A stretch of DNA of 64,000 nt, from sequence record OR620964.1; one strand, 5' to 3'. Under the pieces are notes generated by a model that saw only the letters and a list, made by a program, of their open reading frames with translations, was not told the origin of the DNA and ran no database searches. The translations under genes were made by a program, and so were the position numbers. Numbering within the stretch: the stretch's first letter is position 1; the number at the start of each line of letters is the position of its first letter. This document shows, piece after piece, positions 1,280 through 28,432 of the stretch.

Positions 1280-2047
1280 ATGAACGTAGATAAAACAATG
1301 CCTTCAGGCAAGTGGGAATTTGATGAACCAGTAGCTGCCGTATTCGATAACATGCTGGCCAACTCGATTCCATCGTATGACCGTATGCGTGACCTGACGT
1401 TTCGCTTGGGTAAACGTTTCGTAACACCTGGTTCAACTATTGTTGATCTTGGTGCATCACTAGGCCGTGCTATTGAACCGTTCTGTGAGTATTTCGGTCC
1501 GTACATGTATATTCATGCGGCAGATAGACCTGAGCCAGACCGAGAGATAGGCAATCATTACAGCCTGTATGAAACAGCACCTGCAATGCGTGAGCGTCTT
1601 GCGAAGAATGACGTGTTGAATGCGGCAGATGCAAAACTTGAATCCGAATCTCTTGTGGACGTTGATACGTTTCGTTTTAGTGAGCAGGTTGAATGCTCAC
1701 TGATCCTGTCCGTGCTAACACTACAGTTTACGCCTATCGAACATCGCCAACATATTCTGGAAAAGGTCTATGACTCTCTCCAGACAGGTGGTGCATTCAT
1801 TCTTGTTGAAAAGGTTCTTGGCGACGATAACTATCTGGACAAGCTGTTGGTAGATACTTACTATCAGATGAAAGGTGGTAACGGGTACTCGCAAGAATCC
1901 ATTGCTACCAAGCGTAAGTCGCTAGAAGGTGTTCTGGTTCCTGTTAAGGCAGCGTGGAATGAAGAACTATTACGCAAGGCAGGATTTAGCCGCGTTGAAT
2001 GCTTCTACCGAGATCTTAACTTCGCTGGATGGATCGCGATCAAGTAA
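1280..2047 (+). CDS. cmoA: carboxy-S-adenosyl-L-methionine (Cx-SAM) synthase, CmoA family
   Basis: WEFDEPVAAVFDNMLANSIPSY, IVDLGASLG, LTLQF, GGAFILVEK, NGYSQESIATKRKSLEGVL and AGFSRVE..LNFAGWIAIK align motif by motif with E. coli CmoA ([52 protein letters not shown]), including the Arg of the KR motif. Confidence 0.93.
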   Translation: MNVDKTMPSGKWEFDEPVAAVFDNMLANSIPSYDRMRDLTFRLGKRFVTPGSTIVDLGASLGRAIEPFCEYFGPYMYIHAADRPEPDREIGNHYSLYETAPAMRERLAKNDVLNAADAKLESESLVDVDTFRFSEQVECSLILSVLTLQFTPIEHRQHILEKVYDSLQTGGAFILVEKVLGDDNYLDKLLVDTYYQMKGGNGYSQESIATKRKSLEGVLVPVKAAWNEELLRKAGFSRVECFYRDLNFAGWIAIK

Positions 2048-2054
2048 TGCATGT

Positions 2055-2074
2055 GGGCTGCCTTCGGGTTGCCC
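2055..2074 (+). other. C(UUCG)G tetraloop hairpin without U-tract between cmoA and the amide ligase
   Basis: GGGCTGCC-TTCG-GGTTGCCC followed by TATCTACT rather than a T run. Confidence 0.55.
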
Positions 2075-2099
2075 TATCTACTATATAAGGAGTATTATT

Positions 2100-2954
2100 G
2101 TGTCTAAGGCACTGGCGATTTCTAAAGTAATCAGACGCACATTGGTGAGCACGTTTAAGAACGCGAAAACAGAACGTCCGTTCGTGTTCCTGTCCAGCGG
2201 CGCTGATAGTAACTGTCTTTTGTTCGCTGCGCTTGAGGCAGGCAAGCAACCAGTTACACTATCATTTCATATGGAAGGTACTATTAGTCGTGACTTCCGT
2301 CAGGCGCAAGCAACTGCCAAACTGTTTAACGTACCGTTCATTGAAGTTGTATTACCTACCAACGTCGAGACACTCAAGAAAGAGTGCATACTATTAGCCA
2401 AGAAATACGGATGTCGTAGTAAGTCTGACTTCGAATGTGTCTGGCCTATGTACCACGCGTTCCGTGCTGTTGCGAAATATGCAAAGAAACACAAGATTGC
2501 TTCACCTACAATCTACACAGGTCATGCGGCTGATATATACTACGTTCTTTCCAAGAAAGGTAACATGCATTATAAAGATCGCCCAGACGATTATCGCAAT
2601 GAGCGCTTTGTAGATCCTAAACTATCACAGAGACACATACTGCCTTCGATTGCTTCTGACCTTGAAATTTCTAATGAAATACCATGGGTCGATAAGAAAA
2701 TCTTGAAATCATTCCAAGGTGCTTCTATCGCTGACGTCAATAAGCCTCGTCAGAAAGAGCCGTCACGTCTAGCCTTTGATAGTTATTTCTCCCAAACGAA
2801 AGTCTATCAACATACGAATTTCCAACTCGGTGATAGCGGCATTTCGAAACATTTTGAAGTATTGTTGTCAGATCCTGAATGGAATCCCGACAACAAGTTT
2901 CGTGCTGTCATCGGTGTGTACAACGAACTCTGCCGAAGACTCGGAGTGGCGTAA
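2100..2954 (+). CDS. asparagine-synthetase-like (N-type ATP pyrophosphatase) amide ligase lacking the glutaminase domain; CmoY-like candidate
   Basis: PP-loop VFLSSGADS, D...A...A..F.VP.IEV, and IYTGHAADIYY (cf. TGxGADE); 284 aa, synthetase domain only; GTG start at 2100 behind AAGGAG (the track start at 1929 overlaps cmoA). Confidence 0.82.
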   Translation: MSKALAISKVIRRTLVSTFKNAKTERPFVFLSSGADSNCLLFAALEAGKQPVTLSFHMEGTISRDFRQAQATAKLFNVPFIEVVLPTNVETLKKECILLAKKYGCRSKSDFECVWPMYHAFRAVAKYAKKHKIASPTIYTGHAADIYYVLSKKGNMHYKDRPDDYRNERFVDPKLSQRHILPSIASDLEISNEIPWVDKKILKSFQGASIADVNKPRQKEPSRLAFDSYFSQTKVYQHTNFQLGDSGISKHFEVLLSDPEWNPDNKFRAVIGVYNELCRRLGVA

Positions 2955-3526
2955 TGATTCGCGTATTTGATTCCGGCGCAGGAGGAGCATACGTATCGGA
3001 GTTGCTTACTGCGCACGGAGTACATAACAAACTAAGCATGTTCCCTAACATGTTCCCGTTTGGTACTAAGACAGCCGACCAGTTACTTAGCTTATTTCAT
3101 GATTATCGGAATAGTGTTACTGGTACTGTTTTCTGTGCTTGTAACACTATGAGTCTTGTGCTTAACTCCAATGGGTACGACTTTACCTCATGTGATGTTA
3201 TTCCTACATTTCCTAATCTGTCTCCTGATGCGCCAGTTTGCTACGGCACAAAGAATACAGTTTGTCTGGCTCAGATACTGTCACCTAACCTTAGAGTTCG
3301 TGCCGTGCCTAATCTTGTTTCTATGGCAGAAGATGTATATCAAGGTAGGGCTGATAGGAAAACAGCGCTGGCATTATGGGAACAAGAAGTTAGAGAAACA
3401 ATTCAACTAGGATCTACACACTTGTCATGGCTAGCCCATACTTTAGGTGTAGCTGGTGATCATGTTGAGCCGGACTATATGCGCTTATACGTAGAGCATC
3501 TGTCTGACGAAACAATAGGCATATAG
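2954..3526 (+). CDS. glutamate racemase (MurI)-like protein, second catalytic Cys replaced by Ser
   Basis: IRVFDSGAGG, PFGTKT, FCACNTMS and QLGSTHL (canonical LGCTH); ATG overlaps the ligase stop (TAATG); 190 aa. Confidence 0.85.
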   Translation: MIRVFDSGAGGAYVSELLTAHGVHNKLSMFPNMFPFGTKTADQLLSLFHDYRNSVTGTVFCACNTMSLVLNSNGYDFTSCDVIPTFPNLSPDAPVCYGTKNTVCLAQILSPNLRVRAVPNLVSMAEDVYQGRADRKTALALWEQEVRETIQLGSTHLSWLAHTLGVAGDHVEPDYMRLYVEHLSDETIGI

Positions 3527-3541
3527 CTTCTGGATATAATA

Positions 3542-4177
3542 ATGAAAAAGATTATTAATGTTTTCGATTCTGTTCTAGGTGCGAACTATGTATGTGGTCT
3601 ATTATGTGACGCTGGCTATGATGCGCGTCCGTATACACCACGACGTCAATACGTATCTCGCACGAACTCCGGCCCGGCGTTAACTATTGGCACACGAAGT
3701 GTTGAAGAGGTTAGCGACGAAATAAGCGAGGCGCTTGTTGCGATTCGTGGTAACTGGCTAATCAGTAGTACATCTGCCAGTCTTGTTGCACAGGATATGC
3801 TTGACCTGAAAGGGCTGTCTGAGAATATTGTATATGCAATTCCTGAACTTGATGGTAACCTACCTATATTGGGATCTGCCTTGACCGTCGATAGGGCTAG
3901 ACGCATACAGCGATTGCAATCAATCCATCGACGAGGCAAAAGCTCAAGAGCAGCACCGCTAGTCGATGCTTCGGATTTGTTGGCGCAATTTGAAAACTTA
4001 GCGTACTACGAAGATGAGCCTCAGGCATTCCGTCCTGAATTCGATGCGCTTGTTGGCGATAAGAAGTTTCAGTTAGGTAGTTCTAACCTTGCTCACTATG
4101 CCAAGCTGTGTAAAATTACAAAGCACACAGTTATTGATTATGTAGGTCTGGTGGCACGTCACTTGGAGACAAGATGA
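3542..4177 (+). CDS. degenerate glutamate-racemase-fold paralogue, both catalytic Cys absent
   Basis: INVFDSVLGA, IGTRSVEEV, ISSTSAS (for ACNTAS), QLGSSNL (for LGCTHY), VIDYVGLVARH. Confidence 0.7.
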   Translation: MKKIINVFDSVLGANYVCGLLCDAGYDARPYTPRRQYVSRTNSGPALTIGTRSVEEVSDEISEALVAIRGNWLISSTSASLVAQDMLDLKGLSENIVYAIPELDGNLPILGSALTVDRARRIQRLQSIHRRGKSSRAAPLVDASDLLAQFENLAYYEDEPQAFRPEFDALVGDKKFQLGSSNLAHYAKLCKITKHTVIDYVGLVARHLETR

Positions 4178-4434
4178 TTAATACCTTCACTCTAAAGAAG
4201 ACTCCTACCATTCAGGCATGCCAATGGAATGGCAGTAACATAAAAGAAATGGATACTTTCCTAAATGGATCTGGTTACTGTAAAGGACAGTATGTAGAGG
4301 TTGGTGCTGTTGTTAACGGCCAGCCTACTTTACGTAATGCCAGAGTAGGAAGTTATGTAATCAAGGATGCCCTTGGTAACTATTCTGTGCTTTATGCCGA
4401 AGAACTATTTGAACAGTATGTTCTGTCTGACTAG
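4174..4434 (+). CDS. conserved small phage protein (K-p..I.A.QW.G.N type)
   Basis: KKTPTIQACQWNGSNIKEM...VGSYVIKD pattern typical of a widespread phage family; ATGA overlap with the upstream gene. Confidence 0.7.
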   Translation: MINTFTLKKTPTIQACQWNGSNIKEMDTFLNGSGYCKGQYVEVGAVVNGQPTLRNARVGSYVIKDALGNYSVLYAEELFEQYVLSD

Positions 4435-4442
4435 GAACTCAA

Positions 4443-4904
4443 ATGAATCCGTTTGCAATACTCAAGCAGCAGGTAAAAAAGGCGCTTACGCTTGAATCAA
4501 CACTCGAACCCGAACAGCGCGCCATGTTCGACTGGCAGTACCTTGTTAATGTAAGCGGCCGATATTACAAGGTGGGTAAGACAGGAGCAAATACCTGTTA
4601 CTTTAAAACGCCTGATATGGATGAAGAGAAAGCTGTTTATCCAAATGAACTCGTAGATATAATCGAGTCATGGGGTAAAAGTAAATACGTATCTTTTTCT
4701 ATCTGCCATAAGAACTTTGATAATGTACTGGTAGATAATATCAAGGAAGAAGAACGAGCGCTCAAGTCCAAGCCTAAGAAGTTCAGAAAGGGTATCTTTA
4801 TCTGTGGGTACACACCTAAAGGTAAACGAGTTAAACTATGGCGACTGCGTGAAGGTCTAGCAGGATCTCAGTGGGTAGCCGTTGAACGGGAGTCCAAGCC
4901 GTGA
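4443..4904 (+). CDS. hypothetical protein
   Basis: 153-aa ORF with AGGA RBS. Confidence 0.75.
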   Translation: MNPFAILKQQVKKALTLESTLEPEQRAMFDWQYLVNVSGRYYKVGKTGANTCYFKTPDMDEEKAVYPNELVDIIESWGKSKYVSFSICHKNFDNVLVDNIKEEERALKSKPKKFRKGIFICGYTPKGKRVKLWRLREGLAGSQWVAVERESKP

Positions 4905-5296
4905 TTGTGTCTGAAAAAGAATGTCCACCCTTGCTTACAATTATGGGACTAGCTTATTGGGAACGTAGCTCAGACCCAAGTCACGTTGATGCCTTCCCAA
5001 AAGAATTGCGCAACGCCGAAGGTCTCACTAAAGGAACCCGTGCAGAAGGCTGGATGGCTATTGACTGGTCAGAGAATCCTATTGGCTTTATTGCTGACGG
5101 TGAAGAATATCCCGATGATGATACTGTCTGGATTCGATACCTAGGACCATTCAACCATGACGTATGTGTATCCAGTAAAGTCTCATACATAGGTGACTTG
5201 TTTGCTCGTCATGCATTAATGATCCGCCAGAATGCAAGTCGTAGGAAGACAGGCATTAAGAGTTATTTGTATAAAACGTTTGGTCGTAATAAGTAG
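4901..5296 (+). CDS. hypothetical protein
   Basis: 131-aa ORF, GTGA overlap with the upstream stop. Confidence 0.7.
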   Translation: MIVSEKECPPLLTIMGLAYWERSSDPSHVDAFPKELRNAEGLTKGTRAEGWMAIDWSENPIGFIADGEEYPDDDTVWIRYLGPFNHDVCVSSKVSYIGDLFARHALMIRQNASRRKTGIKSYLYKTFGRNK

Positions 5297-5385
5297 TAGA
5301 ATACTGGGGCTATCGGGCATCTTGTCTTGTAGCCTGAGGTGGGCACTGCCTGCGTCGAACCTAATCCACTAATAGGTAAGACAAA

Positions 5386-5769
5386 ATGAAAATAACTGAA
5401 CAAGTAGAATTCAAATCGAAGTACATTGCGGATGATGGTATGATTAACTTTGCAGACTGTACGCAAGATAGCTTAGATATCATTGCCTCAGATGTATTGC
5501 AGCATTTTGGTTGTATTGCTACGCTTGCTCAAGGTCAGACTGCCGCAATTGAGGGCAGATACTTCGAGGAAGAGACTATCAAGTTAAGGATGGCTAGATC
5601 AGATTGGTCTAATGTATCCGCCTTGTTGAAAGAAAAAGTAGCAGATGCACTTAGTGGTAAGCATCTTCGTAAGGGAGGTCGAATAACTCTCAGGCAAGTG
5701 AGTATGCATGATATAGGTAATTCAGAATTATTCATCAGTCTGATAGTCGGATTTCCAGCGCGAGTGTAA
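5386..5769 (+). CDS. hypothetical protein
   Basis: 127-aa ORF followed by a terminator. Confidence 0.7.
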   Translation: MKITEQVEFKSKYIADDGMINFADCTQDSLDIIASDVLQHFGCIATLAQGQTAAIEGRYFEEETIKLRMARSDWSNVSALLKEKVADALSGKHLRKGGRITLRQVSMHDIGNSELFISLIVGFPARV

Positions 5770-5770
5770 T

Positions 5771-5797
5771 AAAAAGGGTGGCTTCGGCTGCCCTTTT
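5771..5797 (+). terminator. intrinsic terminator, potentially bidirectional
   Basis: AAAAAGGGTGGC-TTCG-GCTGCCCTTTT. Confidence 0.85.
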
Positions 5798-5928
5798 CTG
5801 ATCTTATGCTACATAAAACCACCCATTTTGTTCGAGTAGAACCATGCCTAGGCAGCGTATAGGTAGGCTAATATTGACCTAAATACCACCCCTTTTCTGT
5901 ACCGTGCACAAAGCACTAGAAATATAGA

Positions 5929-5952
5929 AAAACTGTAAATATAGAGTATAAT
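5929..5952 (+). promoter_or_regulatory. putative phage promoter motif, copy 1
   Basis: AAAACTGTAAATATAGAGTATA(AT), identical over 22 bp to 23852-23873; ends in TATAAT 12 nt upstream of the dam ATG. Confidence 0.6.
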
Positions 5953-5964
5953 CGAGGATAAGTA

Positions 5965-6792
5965 ATGACGTACATTAGCCCAATGCGGTATCAAGGATGC
6001 AAGCGCTCTCTGGTGCCGGTTATCAAAGAACTCATGCCACAAGATTGTACTCGGATGATTGATGCATTTGGTGGCTCTGCTACTGTGGTGCTAAATATGG
6101 ATACCAAGCACCGCCTGTATAACGAGAGCAATTTCCATGTATTTAAAATCATCGAACTATTTGCCAGAACAGACCCGAAGAAAACACTGAGCAAAATACG
6201 CCGAGTGATAAAGCGATTTGATCTAACAACCGATAACGATGAGCAGTATTATGAATTCCGTAGTTATGCTAATCGTCGGTATGATCCATTGTTGTTTTAT
6301 ATTCTGTCCCGTCATGCTCACAGCAACATGATTCGTTTCAACGGTAATGATGGATTCAATGCTCCGTTTGGTAAGCGAAGCCTGATAGGTAAGATGGATG
6401 TTCTTGAGCGTGAGGTAGTTGAGTTTTATGATAGAATGCATAACGTGCAATTGTCTAATTCTCGATATGCAGAACTACTTAATCGCATAAGCCACCAGCT
6501 CGATTCTACTTTCATCTATCTTGATCCTCCTTACTTGGCCAGCGGTGCAAACATCTATGACTCTTGGTCTGAGGAATTGGATATCAAGATGATGGCCAAC
6601 CTTGATGCTTTAGATGCAAAGAATGTTAAGTGGATGATGAGTAACGTTCTTACACACCGGCATTTCGAAAACAAGCGACTGGCTCGTTGGGCTAAAAACT
6701 ATCGTCTTATTGACGTAGACAAAACGTATAGTCTTGCGAATGCACAACAAGATAGCCACTCAACCCGTGAAGTGATTATCGTTAACTACTGA
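5965..6792 (+). CDS. dam: Dam-family (D12 class) N6-adenine DNA methyltransferase
   Basis: PMRYQGCKRSL, IDAFGGSATV (motif I), FIYLDPPY (motif IV), WMMSN, REVIIVNY. Confidence 0.92.
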   Translation: MTYISPMRYQGCKRSLVPVIKELMPQDCTRMIDAFGGSATVVLNMDTKHRLYNESNFHVFKIIELFARTDPKKTLSKIRRVIKRFDLTTDNDEQYYEFRSYANRRYDPLLFYILSRHAHSNMIRFNGNDGFNAPFGKRSLIGKMDVLEREVVEFYDRMHNVQLSNSRYAELLNRISHQLDSTFIYLDPPYLASGANIYDSWSEELDIKMMANLDALDAKNVKWMMSNVLTHRHFENKRLARWAKNYRLIDVDKTYSLANAQQDSHSTREVIIVNY

Positions 6793-6799
6793 GGTACTT

Positions 6800-8089: not shown

Positions 8090-8498
8090 CAAACTAAAAG
8101 AGCTGTGGGAGAAACGACATGAACTCGCGGCGCAGTTAGCAGAACTGAATGGCTGGACTGTGCAAGATGGTTGGTCCTACGCCGAGTGTAGTGATGTACC
8201 TGCATGGTTCGATGCGCGTGGACAACAGGTACATACGGTTGATGGGTATATGTACCTGTTGTTTGGTACAAAGTTCTGTATTGATACGATGGATCAATAC
8301 AACATGACGGTTGACCGATCTGATACTGGACTTAGACGTGTATCCTTTTCCGTGTTGCTCGATCCCGTAGAAGAAGCAGTTACCTTTGAGGGAGTAGCGC
8401 ACGGAATACAAGAAGCGCTTGTCTTATCTATAATAAATTTCTATGCGTATACAAAGCGCACACAAGAGGTAAACAATGGAACTACCATTATCAATTGA
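8079..8498 (+). CDS. hypothetical protein
   Basis: ORF in the run; ATG 8079 preferred over 8061; weak resemblance of AAQLAELNGW..WFD to small phage sandwich domains. Confidence 0.7.
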   Translation: MLNDKLKELWEKRHELAAQLAELNGWTVQDGWSYAECSDVPAWFDARGQQVHTVDGYMYLLFGTKFCIDTMDQYNMTVDRSDTGLRRVSFSVLLDPVEEAVTFEGVAHGIQEALVLSIINFYAYTKRTQEVNNGTTIIN

Positions 8499-8979
8499 AA
8501 AATGCGTCGCACTTGTTGCTCAGTGCTTTACGCTTGCTACAAGTTCTAAATCAAAACGACGAGCCTGTGGAGCACTGCTTGTTTGTGTACGTGAAGACGG
8601 TGTGCCCGTTGTTATCAGCTCTGGCATTAATGGTACTGCCCCTGGTGCAGATAATGCTTGTGAGCCACCTTGTCTGACATATACATTTGGTCATGTTGTT
8701 CACGCAGAGCCAAATTGTCTAGCTAACTTTGATTCTGATTTTGTGTTCACTGATAGACATATTCTGTTTGTATCGGATAGCCCGTGCCCACACTGCTTCA
8801 AGATAATTGCAGAGCGGGGTATTAAGCACGTTGTGTTCGGCAGGGGTTATCGTATTCAAGAGCATCTAACCGATGAGGTTCTGGCACTTCACGGTATGAC
8901 TCTGACTCAGGTAGATATGCAGAACGTGATTCAATATCTGTCTAACACTGTTACCAGAATTGAACAGGTGATTTGCTAA
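8476..8979 (+). CDS. dCMP deaminase
   Basis: GINGTAPG, zinc motifs HAEPNC and SPCPHC, GIKHVVF. Confidence 0.92.
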   Translation: MELPLSIEKCVALVAQCFTLATSSKSKRRACGALLVCVREDGVPVVISSGINGTAPGADNACEPPCLTYTFGHVVHAEPNCLANFDSDFVFTDRHILFVSDSPCPHCFKIIAERGIKHVVFGRGYRIQEHLTDEVLALHGMTLTQVDMQNVIQYLSNTVTRIEQVIC

Positions 8980-9134: not shown

Positions 9135-9143
9135 GAGGATACT

Positions 9144-10850: not shown

Positions 10851-11948
10851 ATGTCTCATATTTTTGATTTACGTAATGACGACCACTTCTTTCAATACTC
10901 ACTGGACAATGTAGACTGTCAGTATATGGATCTGGTTAATGCTATTCTGACCGAAGGCACAAAAGAAGCTGATCCGAAACGCAGTGAAGATACTTGGACG
11001 ATGTTACCATCTATCTCTATGACGTTGCGCAATACAGCCATGGCCTTTCCAGTCCTACTATCTAAGCGTACCCGTTACGTGCCAGCTATTGATGAGACGT
11101 GCTGGTTCATGCGCGGTGAGACAAACATCGAGACTCTTAACTCTCGCATATGGGATGAATGGGCAGACGAGTCAGGTGATTGCGGTCCTATCTATGGTTA
11201 CATGTGGCGCCACTGGCCAGATGTAAAAGCATTCCAAGACTTCACTAAGCCATCTGCTGTTTGTCCGTCGGCCGATGCTATCCGTATTCGCAACGAGATT
11301 ATTCGTATGCGCGCCGCTGGATACAAAGAGACTCAGTTGGCTGATGGGCGAATCCTATTTGAAGGTGAAATTGATCAGTTGTTAAATGCACTGAATGCTT
11401 GTGTTGCGCATGACCGTTCTCGTCGTATTAAAGTTGAAGCATGGAATCCTGGGTACATCCATATGCAGGGCCTTCCTCCGTGTCACACTGGTTTTGAATT
11501 CAACGTAACCAAAACTACTGACTATGAGCGTAAGGCAATGGAAGCTATGGGCCATACTGCTTACGAGGATTCGTTACATCTTACTGCCACAATGAGGAGT
11601 CAAGATGTGGCACTTGGAAGAAGTTTTAACATTATTGGCTATACTACGATGCTCCACCTGTTCGCCAAGTATAGCAAGCTAAATATCGGTAGCTTTACGT
11701 TGAACACTTCTAACACGCATGTTTATGACCATCACCGTGAAGGTCTTGAGACACAGCGTAAGCAGTTCCAAGAAATTTTGGACGTTGTGCGGTCTACTGG
11801 TAAGCCTATGCAGTATCCTGTCCTGCATGTTCACGATGATATCATGAAGATGGAGCCAAAAGAAATGCTGGATAGCATTACCAAAGATCATTTTCTTGTT
11901 GAAGGCTATCTGTCTATGCCTGAGATCAAATTCCGCGTCACCAAATAG
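10851..11948 (+). CDS. thyA: thymidylate synthase (ThyA type) with insertions
   Basis: IWDEWAD, GPIYGYMWRHWP, DQL, SRRI...WNP, catalytic LPPCH, RSQD..LG..FNI, HVYDHH. Confidence 0.95.
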   Translation: MSHIFDLRNDDHFFQYSLDNVDCQYMDLVNAILTEGTKEADPKRSEDTWTMLPSISMTLRNTAMAFPVLLSKRTRYVPAIDETCWFMRGETNIETLNSRIWDEWADESGDCGPIYGYMWRHWPDVKAFQDFTKPSAVCPSADAIRIRNEIIRMRAAGYKETQLADGRILFEGEIDQLLNALNACVAHDRSRRIKVEAWNPGYIHMQGLPPCHTGFEFNVTKTTDYERKAMEAMGHTAYEDSLHLTATMRSQDVALGRSFNIIGYTTMLHLFAKYSKLNIGSFTLNTSNTHVYDHHREGLETQRKQFQEILDVVRSTGKPMQYPVLHVHDDIMKMEPKEMLDSITKDHFLVEGYLSMPEIKFRVTK

Positions 11949-12963: not shown

Positions 12964-13623
12964 ATGAATATCCCAGCATCTGGTCAATTACCTTTGGTCT
13001 ATATCGATAGACAATATATTAGTTCTAAATACAATGATGGAAAGTTCCGCGCAACCTGTGAAGTGCGCTCATGTGTAGTTGATGGCTCCTCTATTATTGG
13101 CATTGAAGACTTCTGCGCCAACTCTAAGCAAGAACTGGACAGCGCGATTGACAACTGGTCTACTGAGACCATGAAGCATATCAATCAGAAACTTAATCCA
13201 GTTGGCCGTGAAGCTGTGATTGCTGATATCTTAGAGCAGTTCAAGCAAGAGTTCCATAAGGCGGAACGTGTACACCCTGTGTGGTCTACTGATCCTATTT
13301 ATGCTGCTGCAATTCTCGGAGAAGAGACTGGCGAGACTATTCAAGCAGCACTTAACTTTGTACAGGATGGTGGTACTGAGGAGCAACGAAAATTCATTGG
13401 CGAAGAAGCTGTTCAGGCTGGTGCTATGGCTCTGCGTCTTATCATTAACCTTGATCGCCTTGATGCTTCTCGTGTTGCTGGCTATAGTGTCAGCGACTCA
13501 CATCTTCGCTCTCTTATAGATCACCTAAGTGCGAACGCAAGCCCTGATGTACTTGCGGCGCTTGGGTCTTTCCGTAAACTGATCGATAATCCAGATTTGC
13601 CTGCTGTTCCTTATACAGAGTAA
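12964..13623 (+). CDS. MazG-like NTP pyrophosphohydrolase domain protein with possible HicB-like N-terminus
   Basis: AAILGEETGETIQAALN...GEEAVQAGAMALR is the all-helical EExxE...EE pattern; N-terminal FRATCEV..IIGIEDFCANSKQEL weakly HicB-like. Confidence 0.6.
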   Translation: MNIPASGQLPLVYIDRQYISSKYNDGKFRATCEVRSCVVDGSSIIGIEDFCANSKQELDSAIDNWSTETMKHINQKLNPVGREAVIADILEQFKQEFHKAERVHPVWSTDPIYAAAILGEETGETIQAALNFVQDGGTEEQRKFIGEEAVQAGAMALRLIINLDRLDASRVAGYSVSDSHLRSLIDHLSANASPDVLAALGSFRKLIDNPDLPAVPYTE

Positions 13624-14068: not shown

Positions 14069-14815
14069 ATGACAGATAAGCTAAAGAAAAAGGTGAAAGT
14101 TAAAGGGAAAGAAGAACTGGCGCCTAAGAAGAAAAAGTCGAAAGACAAGCCAGTCAATAAAGCTGTTGGTAAGCCTATTACTAGCATCAAGCAACTTAAA
14201 GGTGCTAAGTATAACCCACGGTTTATTACTGATACGCGACTCAAGTCGTTAGAAAGTTCTATCAGCTCTTTCGGCGATTTGTCAGGTGTTGTATTCAACA
14301 ATAACATTGATTCTGGTGTTCTTATCTCTGGCCACCAGCGTATTGCCTCCATTGCAAAGTGGAAGACACGAGTTGAAGTACAGAAAACGACTGATGCGCA
14401 TGGTACTGTTGGCGTTGGATTTATTCATGCCACCAATCCTAAGTCTGAAAAGACAATCAGTATCCCTTTGCGTATTGTTAACTGGTCAGACAGAAAAGCT
14501 GAGTATGCTGCTAACATCGCGGCAAATGCTCATGGTGGTGAATTCGATAACAGTAAGCTGGCTGCTCTGGTTGAGAAACTGGATATGGATAAAATGCCAA
14601 GCTCGTTAATCGGATTAGACCCTTTGCAACTTCGTGGCCTACGTCAACGCCTTGGTCGTGATGCAGAAGCAATCGAAGCTGCGGCTAATGCTAAGAAGGC
14701 ACCGTCTGGTAAGCAGAATGGATCTACCGGTAAGTTTAAAGAATATACAACTGATGACGTCGAGGCTGAATTACAGCATCGTTGCCCACGTTGTGACTTC
14801 CGGTTTAACTCGTAG
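14069..14815 (+). CDS. ParB/Srx-like domain protein with C-terminal CxxC
   Basis: LKGAKYNPR, SISSFGDLSGVVFN, LISGHQRI, ANIAANAHGGEFD, terminal HRCPRCDFRF. Confidence 0.8.
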   Translation: MTDKLKKKVKVKGKEELAPKKKKSKDKPVNKAVGKPITSIKQLKGAKYNPRFITDTRLKSLESSISSFGDLSGVVFNNNIDSGVLISGHQRIASIAKWKTRVEVQKTTDAHGTVGVGFIHATNPKSEKTISIPLRIVNWSDRKAEYAANIAANAHGGEFDNSKLAALVEKLDMDKMPSSLIGLDPLQLRGLRQRLGRDAEAIEAAANAKKAPSGKQNGSTGKFKEYTTDDVEAELQHRCPRCDFRFNS

Positions 14816-14824: not shown

Positions 14825-16903
14825 ATGGTAATCAAACCACCTACAATGAAAGAGATCAACGCGCTGGAGAAACCTTGGCGCGGTATGAGCTTCTTTGCTG
14901 GATGCGGCGGCTCCAGTACAGGTCACAAGATGAGTGGCGTTAATATTCTGATTGCAAATGAGTTCGTAGACTCGGCGCGGTTATCATATGAAGCAAACCA
15001 TCCGACGACTAAAATGCTGCCGCAGGATATTCGCCGCTTAGACCCAGCTAAGATTTTGAAGTATCTGGGCCTTAAGAAAGGTGAATTGGATTTGCTTGAT
15101 GGTAGTCCTCCTTGCTTCACAGAAGAGACACTCATTCAGACACGTAGTGGCATGAAGTACATCAACCAAATAGTAGTTGATGACTTTGTTCTTACGCACA
15201 AGCAGCGCTATCGCCGTGTCGTTGAGCCTATGCGTCGCCAGTACACAGGACTAATGCATAAGATTGTTAGTTCTGTAAGTGAGAACAATGCTACACCTGA
15301 ACATCCGTACTATATTCGTCGTATGGAAAATGATGTGCTGTCTGAGCCACAGTGGGTAGATGCAAGAGACGTTCGTGTTGGCGATAAGGTAGCTATTCCT
15401 ACTAGCACACACGCGACTGCTGATCTATCTGAGTGCTCTCAACAGATTCGCCAGTGGGCACAGCATGATGAGTTCTGGTGGTTAGTAGGTCAGTGGGTAG
15501 CTAACGGTAGTATGTCTCGTTGTGGAACACACCGAGCTATTCGTTTTCGTACACACAGCTCCCGTGGTAATCAATTGCTTGAGCAGGCGCTCGACCTGCT
15601 GGAGCTAACATCTATTCAGACTGCGTACTGTGGCGGTAAGTATATAGAGCGCTTTGTTATGAATGAAGAACTGGCAACATTCTTCAAGCTGTTCCTAACA
15701 GATAGTGCTCAAGCCCGACAGATACCAGGCTTTGTTTTAGACTTACCTGACAGGTCACAGCGGCAATTTGTATTCGGCTATCAGTCTCGCTGCTATGAGT
15801 CTACTTTTGGTAAGGCGCTTGTCGTACAAACACGCAGTCTTCCTTTCATGACTGCTATGCGTCACCTAGTTGCTTCTGCGTTCAAGTGCCCGCTGTTTAG
15901 TTTCAATACGCAAGCAGCACCAGAAGAACTTCCTGTTAGTAACTTCACTTATCTACCTGAATCCGAGTGCGGCCAGTGGGTAAACCACCAAGCAGTATTC
16001 TTTATTCAGGAAGAAGATCGTGGTTTTATTCGCGATGCTGATGACTTACTTTGGGTTGATGTGCTGGCCAATACGCAATATGAATCTAGTGTGCAGGTAT
16101 ATAACTTTAGTGTATCACAGGATGAGACGTATGTTGCGACGAATACAGTCGTGCACAACTGTAAGGGGTTCTCTTCTGCTGGCGTTAAAGAGGAAGGCTG
16201 GGGACGGGAAGTAAAATATAGCGAGGATAAAGTCCAACACGTCGATGACCTGTTTGATGAGTTCTGCCGTATGCTTAGTGGTACAATGCCTAAAGTATTT
16301 ACGGCAGAGAATGTAAGTGGTCTGGTTAAAGGTGTGTCTCGTGGATTCTTCATTGAGATAATGAAAGAGTTTGATCGTATCGGATATAAAGTTCGAGCAC
16401 CTTTGATGAATGCTGCTTGGCTTGGCGTACCACAATCGAGAGAGCGTATTCTCTTTATGGGTGTGCGTAAGGATATACCGTTTGATGTGCCTGATGTTGA
16501 GGTTCAAGATACGATAGCCATTCTTGCAGATGCCTTGCCTCACATTGCTGCGTTTAAGGGAATCAGGAATGATATGATTACCTACATTCCTGCAATTAAC
16601 AGTCCGTGCAAGACAATAACAGCAACGGATAGTACGGCATATGAAACAGCACGTTTCAGTACCGCGGGCTTTATCGAAACTATGGAAGGCAAGCGCCGCA
16701 AGCTAACCATTGAAGAACTTAAAGTTATTTCTGGTATGCCTTCTGACTATAAGTTAGTTGGTACTTTCGAGCAACAATGGGAACGACTTGGTCGTGTCTG
16801 TGTTCCGCAGATGACACACGCTGCGTCTAAGGCACTTATCGAGCATGTGTTGATTCCTTATGCGAAGAAGCGTAAGAAGAAAGTTGGGGATATCTTCCGA
16901 TGA
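14825..16903 (+). CDS. C5-cytosine DNA methyltransferase-family enzyme with intein; predicted cytosine carboxymethyltransferase (CmoX-like)
   Basis: Motif I FFAGCGG, ANEF, motif IV GSPP|C (split by the intein), VI AENV, VIII PQSRER, IX R.LTIEELKVISGMP; motif X reads LGRVCVP instead of GNSV/GNAV (Arg codon 16793-16795). Confidence 0.88.
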   Translation: MVIKPPTMKEINALEKPWRGMSFFAGCGGSSTGHKMSGVNILIANEFVDSARLSYEANHPTTKMLPQDIRRLDPAKILKYLGLKKGELDLLDGSPPCFTEETLIQTRSGMKYINQIVVDDFVLTHKQRYRRVVEPMRRQYTGLMHKIVSSVSENNATPEHPYYIRRMENDVLSEPQWVDARDVRVGDKVAIPTSTHATADLSECSQQIRQWAQHDEFWWLVGQWVANGSMSRCGTHRAIRFRTHSSRGNQLLEQALDLLELTSIQTAYCGGKYIERFVMNEELATFFKLFLTDSAQARQIPGFVLDLPDRSQRQFVFGYQSRCYESTFGKALVVQTRSLPFMTAMRHLVASAFKCPLFSFNTQAAPEELPVSNFTYLPESECGQWVNHQAVFFIQEEDRGFIRDADDLLWVDVLANTQYESSVQVYNFSVSQDETYVATNTVVHNCKGFSSAGVKEEGWGREVKYSEDKVQHVDDLFDEFCRMLSGTMPKVFTAENVSGLVKGVSRGFFIEIMKEFDRIGYKVRAPLMNAAWLGVPQSRERILFMGVRKDIPFDVPDVEVQDTIAILADALPHIAAFKGIRNDMITYIPAINSPCKTITATDSTAYETARFSTAGFIETMEGKRRKLTIEELKVISGMPSDYKLVGTFEQQWERLGRVCVPQMTHAASKALIEHVLIPYAKKRKKKVGDIFR
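15113..16159 (+). mobile_element. intein (349 aa) with degenerate LAGLIDADG homing-endonuclease region
   Basis: Starts CFTEETLIQTRSG, block B TPEHPYY, block F VYNFSV, ends VVHN followed by +1 Cys; middle WWLVGQWVANGS and QFVFGYQSRC resemble eroded LAGLIDADG blocks. Confidence 0.93.
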
Positions 16904-22877: not shown

Positions 22878-22902
22878 TACAACAAATCGTATGGATTGAT
22901 CA

Positions 22903-23268: not shown

Positions 23269-23282
23269 TGGCTGCCCTTTTT
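23256..23282 (+). terminator. intrinsic terminator overlapping the DUF4326 stop codon
   Basis: AAGGGTGGCC-TAAT-GGCTGCCCTTTTT. Confidence 0.8.
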
Positions 23283-23336
23283 CATTTCTATCAGCAATCT
23301 GTAAAGATGGATCATATTATAAATGAGGATATAGAA

Positions 23337-23861: not shown

Positions 23862-23873
23862 ATATAGAGTATA
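23852..23873 (+). promoter_or_regulatory. putative phage promoter motif, copy 2
   Basis: AAAACTGTAAATATAGAGTATA identical to 5929-5950. Confidence 0.6.
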
Positions 23874-23911
23874 GAGAGCACTCTGCACTCTACCTAATAT
23901 TGGGGCATATT

Positions 23912-24436
23912 ATGAGCTATTCAATGGTAGTAGACTGGAATATTCGCCTAAAGCCAAACACCCCGAAAGAGGTTATCAGCAAGTTACGTGCGTGGCATAA
24001 GAATCCGCATAACTTTGATCACCTTCTCGATCAGGGTATTGATATAGCGGCCGCACTAGGTGCATATGACTCTGATGGATTCGCTGGTGTTTTACCAGAA
24101 GCAAACTTTATCCATGGTTCAGGAGTTGTGTCCTATATACGTACCAGTGCTAACTTCAAGCACCGTAGAGAAGGCGTGAATAGACTCTTTGGCTTCTTAG
24201 CTTGGCTCGAACCTTGGATCGATCATCGTGACGAAGTTATTGGTATCGTCCGTGGTGAAGATGACCTGTATGAATTAAATGATACGTATTATAGAACTAG
24301 CTTTGCTTATGCTCTATGTAATGAAGAGCCTGAGCCATCAAAGGCGTATTCTGAAATTCGCATCATCAATAACTACCCAGAGATCAAATTCACACGGGGC
24401 GACCTGCATGGTAACTATCCATGGTTGCTCGTATAA
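23912..24436 (+). CDS. hypothetical protein
   Basis: ATG 23912 after GGGG; 174 aa. Confidence 0.75.
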   Translation: MSYSMVVDWNIRLKPNTPKEVISKLRAWHKNPHNFDHLLDQGIDIAAALGAYDSDGFAGVLPEANFIHGSGVVSYIRTSANFKHRREGVNRLFGFLAWLEPWIDHRDEVIGIVRGEDDLYELNDTYYRTSFAYALCNEEPEPSKAYSEIRIINNYPEIKFTRGDLHGNYPWLLV

Positions 24437-24449
24437 TAAGGATTGCGTA

Positions 24450-25052
24450 ATGATGAACCGTAAGCAATACCTTTTGTTAAAGCTAAGTGAGGAAGCTGTC
24501 GAAGTAGCAAAAGTTGCTCAAAAGGCAATGCAGTTTGGCATGGACAGCTTCAACCCAAGTGACGTGAAGCGTGAGACTAACGTAGCCAACCTGCACTCTG
24601 AGCTTAATGACTTGTTAGGCATTGTTAACATGCTTAACGAAGAATTCGGCTTTGAATACGTTATCAATGAGCAAGCACTGCTGGCTAAACGCGATAAGGT
24701 TAATAAATACTATGCTGTATCTCAACGTCTTGGTCAGATAGAGAAAGAGCCTGACAATACAGTTCGTATCAGAGTAGGTAATCAAGTTCACCTAATGCCG
24801 GGACTATTTGCAGCACCAGAAATACCTAAGCCTGTGAAGAACGCTATGTACGTCCGACGTGATGGAACCAAAGAAGGTTTCGTTATCGTCTATTGCGCAG
24901 GATATGAACGTGAGACAATGATAGTCAAATGTTTTACGGAAAAAGGATGGCAACTGCAAGACCAGCATCGTTGGTGGGATCAGGTGTATTACGATTTTGA
25001 GCGCGTAGACAACTACCCTGAATGGGCGTCTATTGTGGAGAGTGGTCGATGA
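24450..25052 (+). CDS. MazG-like nucleotide pyrophosphohydrolase domain protein with C-terminal extension
   Basis: KLSEEAVEVAKVAQKAMQFG...LHSELNDLLGIVNML...KRDKVNKY; ATG 24450 after AAGGA. Confidence 0.7.
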   Translation: MMNRKQYLLLKLSEEAVEVAKVAQKAMQFGMDSFNPSDVKRETNVANLHSELNDLLGIVNMLNEEFGFEYVINEQALLAKRDKVNKYYAVSQRLGQIEKEPDNTVRIRVGNQVHLMPGLFAAPEIPKPVKNAMYVRRDGTKEGFVIVYCAGYERETMIVKCFTEKGWQLQDQHRWWDQVYYDFERVDNYPEWASIVESGR

Positions 25053-25618
25053 CAAAGACAGAATTGATTGAATCTAAGGATTGGATTAACCACTGGCGGA
25101 TAATAGAGCTTGTGTATGAAACGCAAGAGAAGCGGCGTATTGCACAGGAGCAAAAACTTGCTATCTGTGGTAGTATTATTGGAAGAAGAACTCAGGTAGC
25201 GCTGGAATTTCTAAAGCATCTTAGTCAAGCACCGATTACTGCACGGGACCGTGTACGTAAGGAGAAAGAACTTGTGCTTGCTTCTCTACCATCTTATTCT
25301 GACTGGCATAGAACACCGATATTCATATCAGGTACATCCGTAGCAGATGAATCAATCTCTATAGAACGTGGTAATGAGATTCTTTCCGAGATTGATTATA
25401 AGCAGGATTGGATACTACGCCAGTTAAATGGAAATGGTTTGAGGCCGGTAGATATTCATGCAGAGCTAGAGACACTAGCACAGCAACCCCAATCGTATCG
25501 TGAGCCGCAGTCGTATCAGCACCAAAAGGGCAATCGCATTCTAACACAACAGCGGTCTCACAAGAAACCTCCAATACAGCAACAACGTATGCTAAGAAAA
25601 ATAGGCCGTGGACGATGA
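25049..25618 (+). CDS. hypothetical protein
   Basis: ATG 25049, ATGA overlap, GGAG RBS. Confidence 0.7.
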   Translation: MTKTELIESKDWINHWRIIELVYETQEKRRIAQEQKLAICGSIIGRRTQVALEFLKHLSQAPITARDRVRKEKELVLASLPSYSDWHRTPIFISGTSVADESISIERGNEILSEIDYKQDWILRQLNGNGLRPVDIHAELETLAQQPQSYREPQSYQHQKGNRILTQQRSHKKPPIQQQRMLRKIGRGR

Positions 25619-25905
25619 CAGACTTAACTGTAAGTGTTTGTGGTATAAAGCTGGATAGTGCGATGGCTAAAGCCCGTGATGAATTCAATGCACATATTCG
25701 TGCGCAGCCTTGGTTTAGTGCGTATATCACGGAGTATCGTGCTGTATCATCCGTAACAGGATCTATGGAAAAGACAAAAGCATTATTGCTTGAGCATCCA
25801 GACCTGACTGCTGATGAACTACGTGATATGCTTGCCGAGCAACGTGCTTCTGCAATGATTGATACACTCTGGAATGCCAGCAACATGGACAAAGATCTTG
25901 GCTAG
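25615..25905 (+). CDS. hypothetical protein
   Basis: 96-aa ORF, ATGA overlap. Confidence 0.7.
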   Translation: MTDLTVSVCGIKLDSAMAKARDEFNAHIRAQPWFSAYITEYRAVSSVTGSMEKTKALLLEHPDLTADELRDMLAEQRASAMIDTLWNASNMDKDLG

Positions 25906-25933
25906 GCAGACCTATAACTATCAGGTAGGAAAT

Positions 25934-26278
25934 ATGAACATTCTAAAGAGAACGTACCTAGTTGATTCGTTTGTAGTAGCAGCCGATAAGTCAGTTCGTG
26001 CAAAAGTACAATGCCTTGTCTGGTTGTTTGGTAAGTGTATTAAGAAAACAATATTAGATGTGCGCTCTGCTAATGCGTGGCGTAAACATGCAGTATGGAC
26101 AGCATCATCCGATACAGATTTCATGCAGTCTCATCCTATCGCCAAGATGTTGTCCAATACTGTAAAAGAAATGAAGTATTACAAGACAACATCGTACCAA
26201 ACACTGATAATGAAACGCCTTCTTATCTCAGTACAGAAAGACTGGCATTCAGCAAAACATAACATATTAACTCAATAA
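25934..26278 (+). CDS. hypothetical protein
   Basis: ATG 25934 after AGGA. Confidence 0.65.
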   Translation: MNILKRTYLVDSFVVAADKSVRAKVQCLVWLFGKCIKKTILDVRSANAWRKHAVWTASSDTDFMQSHPIAKMLSNTVKEMKYYKTTSYQTLIMKRLLISVQKDWHSAKHNILTQ

Positions 26279-26288
26279 GGAAAATATC

Positions 26289-27170
26289 ATGGCATCACCT
26301 AAAGATACAGGTAAGTCCGTTCGCTCTGCACATGCTGCTCCGGCCGCTCCAGGTGCTGTTGTTGTTCCTAAGAAATGTACTTCCCGGCAAGCACAGGCAG
26401 TATCCGTAGCATCGGTTGCCTACCAATCAGCATCTAATAATATTGCAGTGGGTCACGCTATGTGTCGACCTGTACGCATGACAGATATTGGACACGGCCA
26501 AGTTGGTGACAAGACGCTATCTGGCATAATCCAGTCGTCCTATCTAAACTTGCTGGACGCTAGCTCCAATCTGGATATCACATTTGCACAACTTGGTATG
26601 TATCCTACAGCTCCGTATTATACTCTGGTTATGAATATGGATGCAGTATCTGATGTTCCTGTGGCCAATCTTGAAGAGTATCCAGTTCTTAATGCTATCA
26701 TGAACATGAGCGCCGAACTTCGAGATCCTATGCCTCTGAAATATACAGTTTGCACCATGGGCCGTGCTGTTGTAAATGCAGTAGAGTGTTTGATCTACAA
26801 TGCAGAGACAGGCAGAGCCGAGTTCAATGAAATGGATTCTTCGGAAGATCTTGAATGCGCGGCACCGTCAAGTAATCAGATTATGGCTACGCATACAACA
26901 TTTAGTCATTCCTTACATTACATGGCTACTGCTAGTATCGCGCGCCTTAATGCAACTAACTACCGCGTAAATCGTATTCGCTCGGCACTTATCCCAAGCG
27001 GCCCTGTAGAAGCAGCAACGGATTCGAAAGCGCTTGGCCCTACCTGCAATTTACAGGAAGATATCTCACTGCGTGAGACTCTGGACAGCCTGGTAGCTAC
27101 TCAGGCACTATTGCATGAGAATATCACGATGTTAAACATCGAAATTCGCGATAACTATCTGTCTCTGTAG
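26289..27170 (+). CDS. hypothetical protein
   Basis: 293-aa ORF, AAGGA RBS. Confidence 0.8.
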   Translation: MASPKDTGKSVRSAHAAPAAPGAVVVPKKCTSRQAQAVSVASVAYQSASNNIAVGHAMCRPVRMTDIGHGQVGDKTLSGIIQSSYLNLLDASSNLDITFAQLGMYPTAPYYTLVMNMDAVSDVPVANLEEYPVLNAIMNMSAELRDPMPLKYTVCTMGRAVVNAVECLIYNAETGRAEFNEMDSSEDLECAAPSSNQIMATHTTFSHSLHYMATASIARLNATNYRVNRIRSALIPSGPVEAATDSKALGPTCNLQEDISLRETLDSLVATQALLHENITMLNIEIRDNYLSL

Positions 27171-27233
27171 TATCGACTGCATAGTATTGGCCTTTACTGG
27201 TATCTAATATAAACTTTATTTGTGGAATAGAAA

Positions 27234-28016
27234 ATGACTGAACCTAAAGTAAAACGTAATAACCGTGGTCGCTTTGAAAGTATTGCAGAAGCAAAAGCAC
27301 CAGTGGCTCAACAAGAGCAAGATAGTCTGGCTACCGCAGATCCAGCGCAAGATAGTCTAGACCATGCAGAGCCAGATCCAGCTATGCCTTCTCAAGCACA
27401 GCGCATGGTTGATTCCTGCCGTAATCTGACCCGAATCTGTATTGTTATCTCTGCCGCTCTGTATGACTGTGGTCTACTGCCTACCGATGATTTGTATGAA
27501 TCGTTGAAGGGTGAGTCAGATGTGTGCGAAGACGAAGATGCTGCACCATCACTCATGGCAGACGTATCGAATACAATCCTTAACTCGCTGCGTGAAGGTG
27601 CTACTGCATATAACTGCCGAGCAATGACTGTCATTGAAGGTAATGCTGTGCCCGCAATGAATTTCGCAGTGCTTATCTCAATGCTGTCCCGCCAACAAGA
27701 TCTGGAAACTGCATACGGCGAATCGTACAAAGAGAATCTCATCCAAAACATGCCAATGCCTCTAGTTGGCCAAGATATGGTACTTCGTTCGTTTGATGAG
27801 ATTCGTGACAATGTGGCGACTGCTGCCTACACCTTGTTCGGTGTTCAGGTCAATCCTGATTCTGTTGCTGATCAAGATTTCACTCCTCGCGAAAACGTAT
27901 CTGATGCCAATGAGAATGTGATTACCATTCTGGACACAACGGCAACTCTGCTTCGTACCGATATTATTCGTAACATCAATATGCACTTTGGTGTAGAGTG
28001 CCCAGGAGTCGTATGA
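27234..28016 (+). CDS. hypothetical acidic protein
   Basis: 260-aa ORF; translationally coupled to the chorismate mutase gene. Confidence 0.8.
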   Translation: MTEPKVKRNNRGRFESIAEAKAPVAQQEQDSLATADPAQDSLDHAEPDPAMPSQAQRMVDSCRNLTRICIVISAALYDCGLLPTDDLYESLKGESDVCEDEDAAPSLMADVSNTILNSLREGATAYNCRAMTVIEGNAVPAMNFAVLISMLSRQQDLETAYGESYKENLIQNMPMPLVGQDMVLRSFDEIRDNVATAAYTLFGVQVNPDSVADQDFTPRENVSDANENVITILDTTATLLRTDIIRNINMHFGVECPGVV

Positions 28017-28432
28017 GCAAGTTAGATGAACTGCGATCTTCCGTAGATATGCTTGATACAGGTCTGGCTCTTGCGCTAACGCGTGATTCTGATATGAATG
28101 AAGTGGATGAAGACATCTACTTTGGTCGTCTTGGTGCATTGTTCGAACGAGCCGTTGAACGTATCGAAGCTGCTGGCTATGGCTCTTCGAAAACTGTGAT
28201 GTGTATATCGTTGCTTATTCTTCGCTCTATCTATGTGGTTGAGATCATGGATGAGAAGAAGCGCCTTGGCATTGTTGCCTATCAGCCAGAACGTGAGCAA
28301 CAGATTCGAGATCGTCTAACAGCTATCCCTAATATTAGCCCTGCGGTAGTTGAGCTAATGATGCAGGTAGTTGAAGATATGCGTAACGGTCAGCTATTAG
28401 ATCCAGAAGGCTTTCGACCAAGTTTGAACTAA
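28013..28432 (+). CDS. aroQ: AroQ-class chorismate mutase with an about 46-aa insertion
   Basis: LDELRSSVDMLD; LLILRSIYVVEIMDEKKRLGIVAYQPERE; VVEDMRNGQ. By-eye register places R8, R71, K82, R94, E95 and Q127 on E. coli PheA CM residues R11, R28, K39, R51, E52 and Q88; AGGAG RBS. Confidence 0.8.
   Translation: MSKLDELRSSVDMLDTGLALALTRDSDMNEVDEDIYFGRLGALFERAVERIEAAGYGSSKTVMCISLLILRSIYVVEIMDEKKRLGIVAYQPEREQQIRDRLTAIPNISPAVVELMMQVVEDMRNGQLLDPEGFRPSLN

Follow-up and report, generated by a model that had tools for sequence, protein, structure and literature searches.

A candidate CmoA/CmoX/CmoY-type cytosine hypermodification system with exchangeable ligase and tailoring genes in Yersinia phage fHe-Yen9-02

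The terminal 64 kb of the Yersinia phage fHe-Yen9-02 record (OR620964.1, 248,678 bp), here called the window, carry the genes of what is probably a post-replicative cytosine hypermodification pathway of the CmoA/CmoX/CmoY kind, with tailoring by a compact MurI-fold protein, rac1, and a possible supply of precursor by an AroQ-like protein. Judged by sequence comparison, the core system is a further example of the one published for Synechococcus phage S-B43 and is not itself new; what is new here is the association of amide ligases with tailoring genes in cassettes, together with a MurI-derived pair, rac1 and rac2. The window is identical in sequence to the corresponding part of the record, and a window position equals the OR620964.1 position minus 184,678. 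fHe-Yen9-02 is a jumbo phage with Y. enterocolitica O:9 as its host, and the papers that mention it do not discuss the six genes named here (CmoA, ligase, rac1, rac2, CmoX and the AroQ-like gene), which GenBank labels ‘tRNA methyltransferase’ or ‘hypothetical protein’. The original prediction for this DNA spoke of five genes while its own list named six; all six exist, and every + strand open reading frame (ORF) that it named is present (Table 1).

In S-B43, CmoA makes carboxy-S-adenosylmethionine (Cx-SAM) from S-adenosylmethionine (SAM) and prephenate, CmoX makes 5-carboxymethylcytosine (5cxmC) at GC sites, and the ligase CmoY attaches glycine to give 5-glycylcarboxymethylcytosine (Yang et al., Nat Commun 2025, PMC12783734); what the original prediction said of this paper is correct. 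Wild-type CmoX from this phage accepts Cx-SAM only, and R350 of SpCmoX contacts the cofactor carboxylate (PMC12783734; structure 8YF3). The same authors catalogued 5,615 CmoX, 4,257 CmoA, 2,251 ligase and 1,660 ParBc proteins in phage contigs, considered it probable that ligases of other clusters work with other amines, and remarked that the availability of prephenate needs study (PMC12783734). Neither that paper nor its supplements mention chorismate mutase, racemase, intein, Erwinia or Yersinia, and besides it our literature search found no paper linking CmoA to phage DNA modification.

The CmoA/CmoX/CmoY core

Support for the core route comes from the match between the window transferase and SpCmoX, from an Arg residue aligned with R350, and from the homology of the other two enzymes to SpCmoY and SpCmoA. 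Among solved structures, the transferase matches SpCmoX best (8yf3, 7e-52), with the HaeIII and HhaI methylases far behind. In the phmmer alignment, Arg657 (nt 16793-16795, within ERLGRVCVP) falls on SpCmoX R350 (ERVGRMVPP) and replaces the motif-X Asn (HhaI N304), in agreement with the Arg that had been predicted in motif X. By analogy with the SpCmoX structure, Arg657 would bind the carboxylate of the cofactor. The engineered carboxymethyltransferases M.MpeI N374K and Dcm N436K likewise carry a basic residue in place of the motif-X Asn (PMC12783734 and the original prediction), whereas the phage CmoX is natural and uses Arg instead of Lys. The further motifs ENV (aa 495-497) and QSRER (aa 537-541, with RxR present) were also found. 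Thus, the route that had been proposed, from Cx-SAM to 5cxmC in DNA and on to an amino-acid amide, is supported by homology to the characterised S-B43 enzymes and by the diagnostic Arg.

The CmoX precursor is interrupted by an intein that begins with CFTEE, contains TPEH at aa 157-160, ends in VVHN and is followed by a +1 Cys, which together are the signatures expected of such an element. Pfam returns Intein_splicing (8e-7) and Hint_2 (1e-4) for this segment, both below their cutoffs, and recognises no homing-endonuclease domain in it. Removal of the intein would rejoin GSPP and C into the SPPC motif; the unspliced precursor also reads SPPC literally. The intein-free CmoX of Pseudomonas phage PaBG reads GSPPCKSFS, which confirms the junction. 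The intein also occurs in Erwinia-clade homologues (the Y3 homologue has 709 aa; phrog_36001) and is absent in PaBG and S-B43. Its position, exactly between SPP and the catalytic Cys, would allow it to act as a post-translational switch, and it also offers a natural tool. The ParB-like protein encoded directly 5' of CmoX is 42% identical to the ParB-like nuclease of PaBG, which also directly precedes CmoX, and an association of ParBc with CmoX was noted by Yang et al. (PMC12783734). As a separate matter of base composition, CCGG is strongly depleted in the window (positions 1-64000, observed/expected 0.37), and GC, GCGC and TGCA are slightly over-represented there, with no link established to the target motif of CmoX.

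The window CmoA matches the CmoA equivalog family TIGR00740 (E 3.2e-42, 144.9 bits) in two stretches separated by a divergent middle segment, the solved CmoA structures 4gek (E. coli CmoA) and 1im8 (5e-30), and the assayed SpCmoA (29% identity over 238 aa, E 5e-25); its homology to biochemically validated CmoA enzymes extends over the full length. Weighing against this assignment, the TIGR00740 score lies under the curated cutoff of 193.3 bits, and the match to PRK15451 (107.7 bits) does not reach its cutoff of 285. The ligase, in which a PP-loop (SSGADS) is present and a glutaminase domain absent, follows the CmoY pattern; it matches SpCmoY (31% identity over 252 aa, E 7e-31) and phrog_26038 (4e-68), and it belongs to a distinct subtype. 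The text of the supplements of Yang et al. does not name the pocket residues of the ligase, which are given in images only (PMC12783734). As had been predicted, translation of the ligase probably starts at GTG 2100, preceded by an AAGGAG Shine-Dalgarno sequence; the GenBank start at 1959, which would overlap CmoA by 89 nt, is probably wrong.

We then examined the distribution of these enzymes among 50,697 phage records. CmoA homologues were found in 70 records and CmoX homologues in 59, both being present in all 48 Erwinia, 2 Dickeya and 1 Yersinia records (51 in total) as well as in PaBG. The two Cmo loci of the window are arranged with 13.5 kb between CmoA and CmoX, and a gap of 13-22 kb is common to about 50 Erwinia/Dickeya jumbo phages, in which the respective positions of CmoA and CmoX are about 12-13 kb and about 28-35 kb. 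Because positions are alike across this clade, whereas PaBG and S-B43 have compact clusters, the split layout is a clade trait. The dispersal is seen in about 50 known jumbo phages, and since the published survey was made at the level of contigs, the expectation that a neighbourhood search would miss the connection does not necessarily hold. Furthermore, AD1 and Y3 share CmoA, the ligase, a C5 methylase and a ParB-like ‘repressor’, all of which are missing from their relative JA11 (Day et al. 2018, PMC6143709), and this joint presence and absence supports the view that the genes form one functional unit. A recent transfer of CmoA, considered on account of its 93% identity to that of Y3, was rejected, since CmoA identity to the window spans 69-93% across the Erwinia/Dickeya jumbo clade.

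Compared with S-B43, the window has the same three enzyme families, the SPPC motif and an Arg at the R350 position, a synthetase-only ligase and a ParB-like protein. It differs in having two loci instead of compact contiguous genes, in that its CmoX alone carries an intein, in the coupling of its ligase to a MurI-fold protein with a degenerate paralogue, and in its orphan AroQ-like gene. PaBG and the Erwinia/Dickeya jumbo phages (Y3, AD1, Alexandra, Yoloswag and the SNUABM series) have clusters, so far uncharacterised, that resemble it, with CmoA 46-93% and the CmoX C-extein 46-75% identical, the ParB-like/CmoX pair, homologues of rac2 and phrog_23597 and, in the Erwinia clade, the intein. These phages have other ligase subtypes, however, accompanied by a DgcN-like protein, by a 2-oxoglutarate (2OG)-Fe(II) oxygenase or, in PaBG, by neither, and none of them has rac1 or the AroQ-like gene.

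Ligase and tailoring gene cassettes

Comparison of the L-numbered loci, which are relatives or metagenomic contigs, with the window indicates that a ligase and a tailoring gene act as exchangeable cassettes among related jumbo phages. At nine of the nine rac1 loci with upstream sequence (the window, L005, L006, L007, L010, L096, L097, L098 and a fragment, L099), a ligase lies directly 5' of rac1, its stop overlapping the rac1 start. The pairing holds even where no CmoA is adjacent (L005/L006 and L096/L097). The window ligase shares 81-83% identity with the ligase of every rac1-bearing contig and 26-44% with other ligases of the clade. Two sister groups have a different accessory gene in the place of rac1 (groups B and C in Table 1), and ligases paired with rac1 are 77-87% identical to one another, those paired with the 2OG oxygenase 89% and those with the DgcN-like protein 93%, against 24-36% between groups. 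CmoA identities cross these boundaries: fHe-Yen9-02 and Y3 share 93% in CmoA and 35% in the ligase, and L007 and Yoloswag 84% and 33%, respectively. Ligase type therefore tracks the accessory gene and not CmoA, which suggests that the ligase and accessory gene are inherited and exchanged together, and this in turn argues for their functional coupling. A point against such coupling is PaBG, which is without such an accessory gene and yet has the next-closest ligase to the rac1 group, at 44% identity.

DgcN has been described as the key gene in a pathway of D-Glu racemisation (PMC12363236). The DgcN-like match in group B belongs to the D-glutamate N-acyltransferase family (6e-84), and two of the three accessory families (MurI and DgcN) point to glutamate or D-glutamate chemistry. 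Chemically, a glutamate amide of 5cxmC would be an N-acyl-glutamate. The sister cassettes look like alternative tailoring sets for the same 5cxmC handle.

The sole family match of rac1 is TIGR00067, and it is weak (2.7e-6, 27 bits against a cutoff of 146.65). Its own family has 13 members, including 12 metagenomic homologues at 44-56% identity, in all of which VFDSGAGG, FPFG, CACNTMSL, AE and GSTH are invariant. An AlphaFold2 (AF2) model built on the alignment of these members reached a predicted local distance difference test score (pLDDT) of 95.4 and a predicted template modelling score (pTM) of 0.90. In a Foldseek search of the PDB with this model, the top 39 matches were all glutamate racemases (query TM-score, TMq, of about 0.6-0.68). 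As modelled, rac1 has the Asp/Glu racemase (MurI) fold; a phmmer search of the PDB gave spurious Fab matches only, and the fold is taken from AF2 and Foldseek. With MurI/RacE, rac1 shares this fold and the motifs FDSGxGG, P(Y/F)G, ACNT, AE and G-x-TH, and an alignment to E. coli MurI (27% identity) keeps the Asp, first Cys, Glu and His positions. It differs in being about 90 residues shorter (190 aa against about 265-285 aa) and in its second catalytic Cys (GCTH), which is Ser in all 13 family members, so that rac1 is not a canonical two-thiol racemase. The rac2 family aligns to that of rac1 in hhalign (98.3%, E 1.7e-14, 182 columns), and rac2 has no family match of its own, carries Ser in place of both catalytic Cys and retains neither the Asn nor the His. 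Homologues of rac2 were found in Y3, AD1, Alexandra, L007, L010, L098 and L099, of which Y3, AD1 and Alexandra carry it without rac1. These substitutions in rac1 and rac2 weigh against the reading of the pair proposed below. As the earlier proposal had it, the racemase-fold pair does look like an addition to the known scheme, with rac1 tied to one ligase subtype (9/9); racemase activity is unproven in view of the Cys losses.

The protein encoded at 4443-4904 is a candidate for a further, so far overlooked part of the system: in the compact cluster of PaBG, the gene of its homologue PaBG_179 (32% identical, E 1e-22) is flanked by those of CmoA and the ligase. The gene that follows the PaBG ligase, PaBG_181, was tested as a homologue of rac2 and rejected. 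At 1.8 kb 3' of rac2 the window also encodes a Dam-like N6-adenine methyltransferase (5965-6792, PF02086, 9e-29), whose position is kept in L007, L010 and L099.

Table 1. Features of the candidate hypermodification system in the window, and accessory genes of related cassettes (aa, amino acids)
Feature	Position	Strand	Basis
CmoA-type carboxy-SAM synthase, 255 aa	1280..2047	+	TIGR00740, PDB CmoA, SpCmoA homology
CmoY-type ATP-dependent amide ligase, 284 aa	2100..2954	+	PP-loop SSGADS, SpCmoY homology
rac1, compact MurI-fold protein, 190 aa	2954..3526	+	start overlaps ligase stop (TAATG)
rac2, degenerate rac1 paralogue, 211 aa	3542..4177	+	hhalign to rac1 family
Conserved protein, 153 aa, phrog_23597, possible further component	4443..4904	+	by position only
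ParB-like protein, directly 5' of CmoX	14069..14815	+	phrog_620, 3.5e-31
CmoX precursor (C5 transferase), 692 aa	14825..16903	+	best PDB match SpCmoX 8yf3
CmoX N-extein, aa 1-96, ends ...LLDGSPP	14825..15112	+	aligns to 8yf3 residues 21-98, 78 bits
Intein, 349 aa (aa 97-445)	15113..16159	+	Cys1, TPEH block B, C-terminal HN
CmoX C-extein, catalytic Cys446 = +1 residue	16160..16903	+	alignment to 8yf3
Orphan AroQ-like protein, 139 aa	28013..28432	+	Pfam CM_2; start overlaps upstream orphan stop (ATGA)
Group A accessory gene (window, L005/6, L007, L010, L096/7, L098, L099)			MurI-like rac1
Group B accessory gene (AD1, Alexandra), DgcN-like DUF1611 protein in the place of rac1	L003:5777-6832 (AD1_017); L012:5777-6832		NF041892, 6e-84
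Group C accessory gene (Y3, Yoloswag), 2OG-Fe(II) oxygenase in the place of rac1	L002:6948-7586 (Y3_020); L013:6947-7588		PF13640, 1.6e-15

The AroQ-like protein

The product of the ORF at 28013, which has GGAG upstream of its start, is quite likely an AroQ-fold enzyme, and it is the weakest-supported of the six named genes. It matches Pfam CM_2 (E 9.4e-6) over profile positions 12-70 of 80, NCBIfam PRK06285 (6e-4) and, in hhalign, a profile of the enterobacterial PheA/TyrA chorismate mutase (CM) domains (P 9e-4). In a MAFFT alignment with the E. coli PheA and TyrA CM domains, its residues R8, R71, K82, R94, E95 and Q127 fall on EcCM R11, R28, K39, R51, E52 and Q88. With the AroQ mutases (E. 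coli PheA/TyrA CM and the engineered monomeric mMjCM, 2gtv) it therefore shares six active-site equivalents, and it would likewise be helical; it differs in an insert in helix 1, which is reminiscent of the loop that makes mMjCM monomeric. A search of genome contigs intended to give a more diverse AroQ profile was of little use, returning only enterobacterial PheA proteins more than 91% identical to the query.

It is somewhat unlikely, in our estimate, that this ORF does not encode a chorismate mutase but a lineage-specific helical protein with a fortuitous similarity to AroQ, or an AroQ fold with another activity (for example isochorismate-pyruvate-lyase-like). Several findings nevertheless lean that way and weigh against a chorismate mutase: the CM_2 match, at 26.2 bits, falls under the gathering score of 27.0; the only phmmer match in the PDB is monomeric MjCM (2gtv), at 0.69; the single-sequence AF2 model is poor (pLDDT 54); the insert, of 46 residues in the MAFFT alignment, splits helix 1; and D48 and S84 are replaced by Gln and Met. 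On the other hand, three independent profile comparisons converge on a single region, the N-terminal LRxxVDxLD motif aligns together with R28, K39, R51, E52 and Q88, and D48 and S84 both differ in E. coli TyrA as well. Homologues by which conservation could be judged are lacking: tblastn of the phage records (E up to 10) gave none, and neither did a word-indexed set of 5.8 billion clustered proteins or 1.84 billion representatives scanned exhaustively with phmmer, the sole exception in these searches being a 99%-identical copy on a 907-bp contig.

The genomic setting of the gene also weighs against a part in the pathway. No copy was detectable in any rac1-bearing or CmoA-bearing relative, so that the co-occurrence with the other families that had been put forward as a test fails for this gene, both in relatives and among the 1.84 billion representative proteins. 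It lies 26 kb from the CmoA locus inside a block of orphan genes. Directly 5' of it, at 26289-28016, are ORFs of 293 and 260 aa with no Pfam or PHROG match, the nearer of which (27234-28016) has no tblastn match in other phages, and these orphan neighbours place the AroQ-like gene in a lineage-specific block. Tblastn of the E. coli PheA CM domain against the phage records found nothing apart from one bacterial contig filed there. Against this background, the presence of a rare, putatively prephenate-forming enzyme in one of the roughly 0.1% of phage records with the prephenate-consuming CmoA is suggestive, as a single observation. The description of the pathway as ‘self-supplying’ in the original prediction is plausible and weakly supported, depending as it does on a single orphan gene whose family match is borderline.

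A proposed pathway and its rivals

The shikimate pathway of the host supplies chorismate, and the host enzymes PheA and TyrA are bifunctional and feedback-regulated. By pathway logic, the AroQ-like protein, if active, would provide more free and unregulated prephenate for CmoA, which, by homology, would combine it with SAM to form Cx-SAM. Splicing of the CmoX precursor would remove the intein, rebuild the SPPC motif and thereby activate the transferase, and CmoX would then, with the adjacent ParB-like protein, transfer the carboxymethyl group to C5 of cytosines in phage DNA. The PP-loop ligase, as its homology to assayed enzymes suggests, would adenylate the carboxylate of 5cxmC and couple an alpha-amino acid to it. 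The role of rac1, which is coupled translationally to the ligase, can be sketched with low confidence only: most likely it would provide a D-amino acid or bind one, glutamate being the best guess, or alternatively, and with equally low confidence, it may epimerise the attached residue. The product would then be unlike the glycine amide of S-B43. Speculatively, rac2 could be a non-catalytic binding partner.

Taken to its furthest, this scheme predicts an undescribed base in fHe-Yen9-02 and its metagenomic relatives, namely 5cxmC carrying a D-amino acid in amide linkage, D-glutamate being the most plausible (predicted nucleoside [M+H]+ of about 415). A MurI-derived enzyme would make or handle the amino acid, a split-helix chorismate mutase of the phage's own would supply prephenate, and sister phages would carry hydroxylated or otherwise tailored variants. 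In this full form we regard the proposal as tentative and rather unlikely. If true, fHe-Yen9-02 would be the first phage found to raise the supply of a shikimate-pathway intermediate in order to modify DNA. Descriptions of the carboxymethyl-cytosine handle go back no further than late 2025, and a single end product, the glycine amide, is known. The locus bears on the questions raised by Yang et al. about other attached amines and the source of prephenate: it provides candidates, open to testing, for a new amide whose amino acid is tailored by dedicated enzymes, and the AroQ-like protein is a candidate precursor-supply enzyme. The swapped cassettes (MurI-like, DgcN-like and 2OG oxygenase) would imply that phages already in culture carry a range of differently hypermodified cytosines.

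Two other explanations of the accessory genes have to be weighed against hypermodification with rac1 tailoring. The pathway may simply be that of S-B43, running from 5cxmC to an amide of glycine or an L-amino acid, with the racemase-fold pair and the AroQ-like gene as unrelated accessories that, for example, perturb the D-Glu/peptidoglycan or aromatic amino-acid metabolism of the host. The core enzymes do suffice in S-B43, PaBG and S-B43 both lack rac1, one catalytic Cys is missing in rac1 and both in rac2, and the AroQ-like gene is an orphan distant from the other genes. Yet the overlap of ligase and rac1 in all nine pairs, together with a ligase subtype that co-varies with the accessory gene and not with CmoA, is hard to explain without functional coupling, and we consider this simpler pathway unlikely. 

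In the other explanation, rac1 would act after ligation on the DNA-bound N-acyl amino acid, as a one-base epimerase or another Cys-dependent tailoring enzyme, similar in role to the 2OG oxygenase of Y3 and Yoloswag. The accessories of the sister cassettes (2OG oxygenase and DgcN-like protein) are typical tailoring enzymes, the glutamate amide of 5cxmC would offer an N-acyl-glutamate as substrate, and the invariant Cys/Ser pair speaks against a standard racemase of free amino acids. However, the motifs with which MurI binds a free alpha-amino acid (DS, PFG, CNT and TH) are all kept in rac1, and no DNA-binding surface is evident on the compact, closed MurI fold, on which no dedicated analysis was made; action after ligation seems to us quite improbable. 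Cytosine hypermodification of the CmoA/CmoX/CmoY kind, with tailoring by rac1, remains the reading that we prefer.

Among the other genes of the window, the thymidylate-synthase homologue is unusually long, its 365 aa extending about 75 residues beyond PF00303, and a dCMP deaminase, an NTP pyrophosphohydrolase and another conserved phage protein (12964-13623), the last with PHROG matches only, lie between the Cmo loci. The coordinates given together for the thymidylate-synthase homologue, the deaminase, the pyrophosphohydrolase and the conserved protein are 10851-11948, 8476-8979, 24450-25052 and 12964-13623. A radical-SAM gene whose presence varies together with that of the system in AD1 and Y3 is absent from the window and present elsewhere in the fHe-Yen9-02 genome; the radical-SAM protein was listed with the Cmo genes as absent from JA11 (Day et al. 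2018, PMC6143709). This MoaA-like protein (L095:22934-24277, Y3_274) occurs in 47 phage records, all of them from the Erwinia/Dickeya/Yersinia clade.

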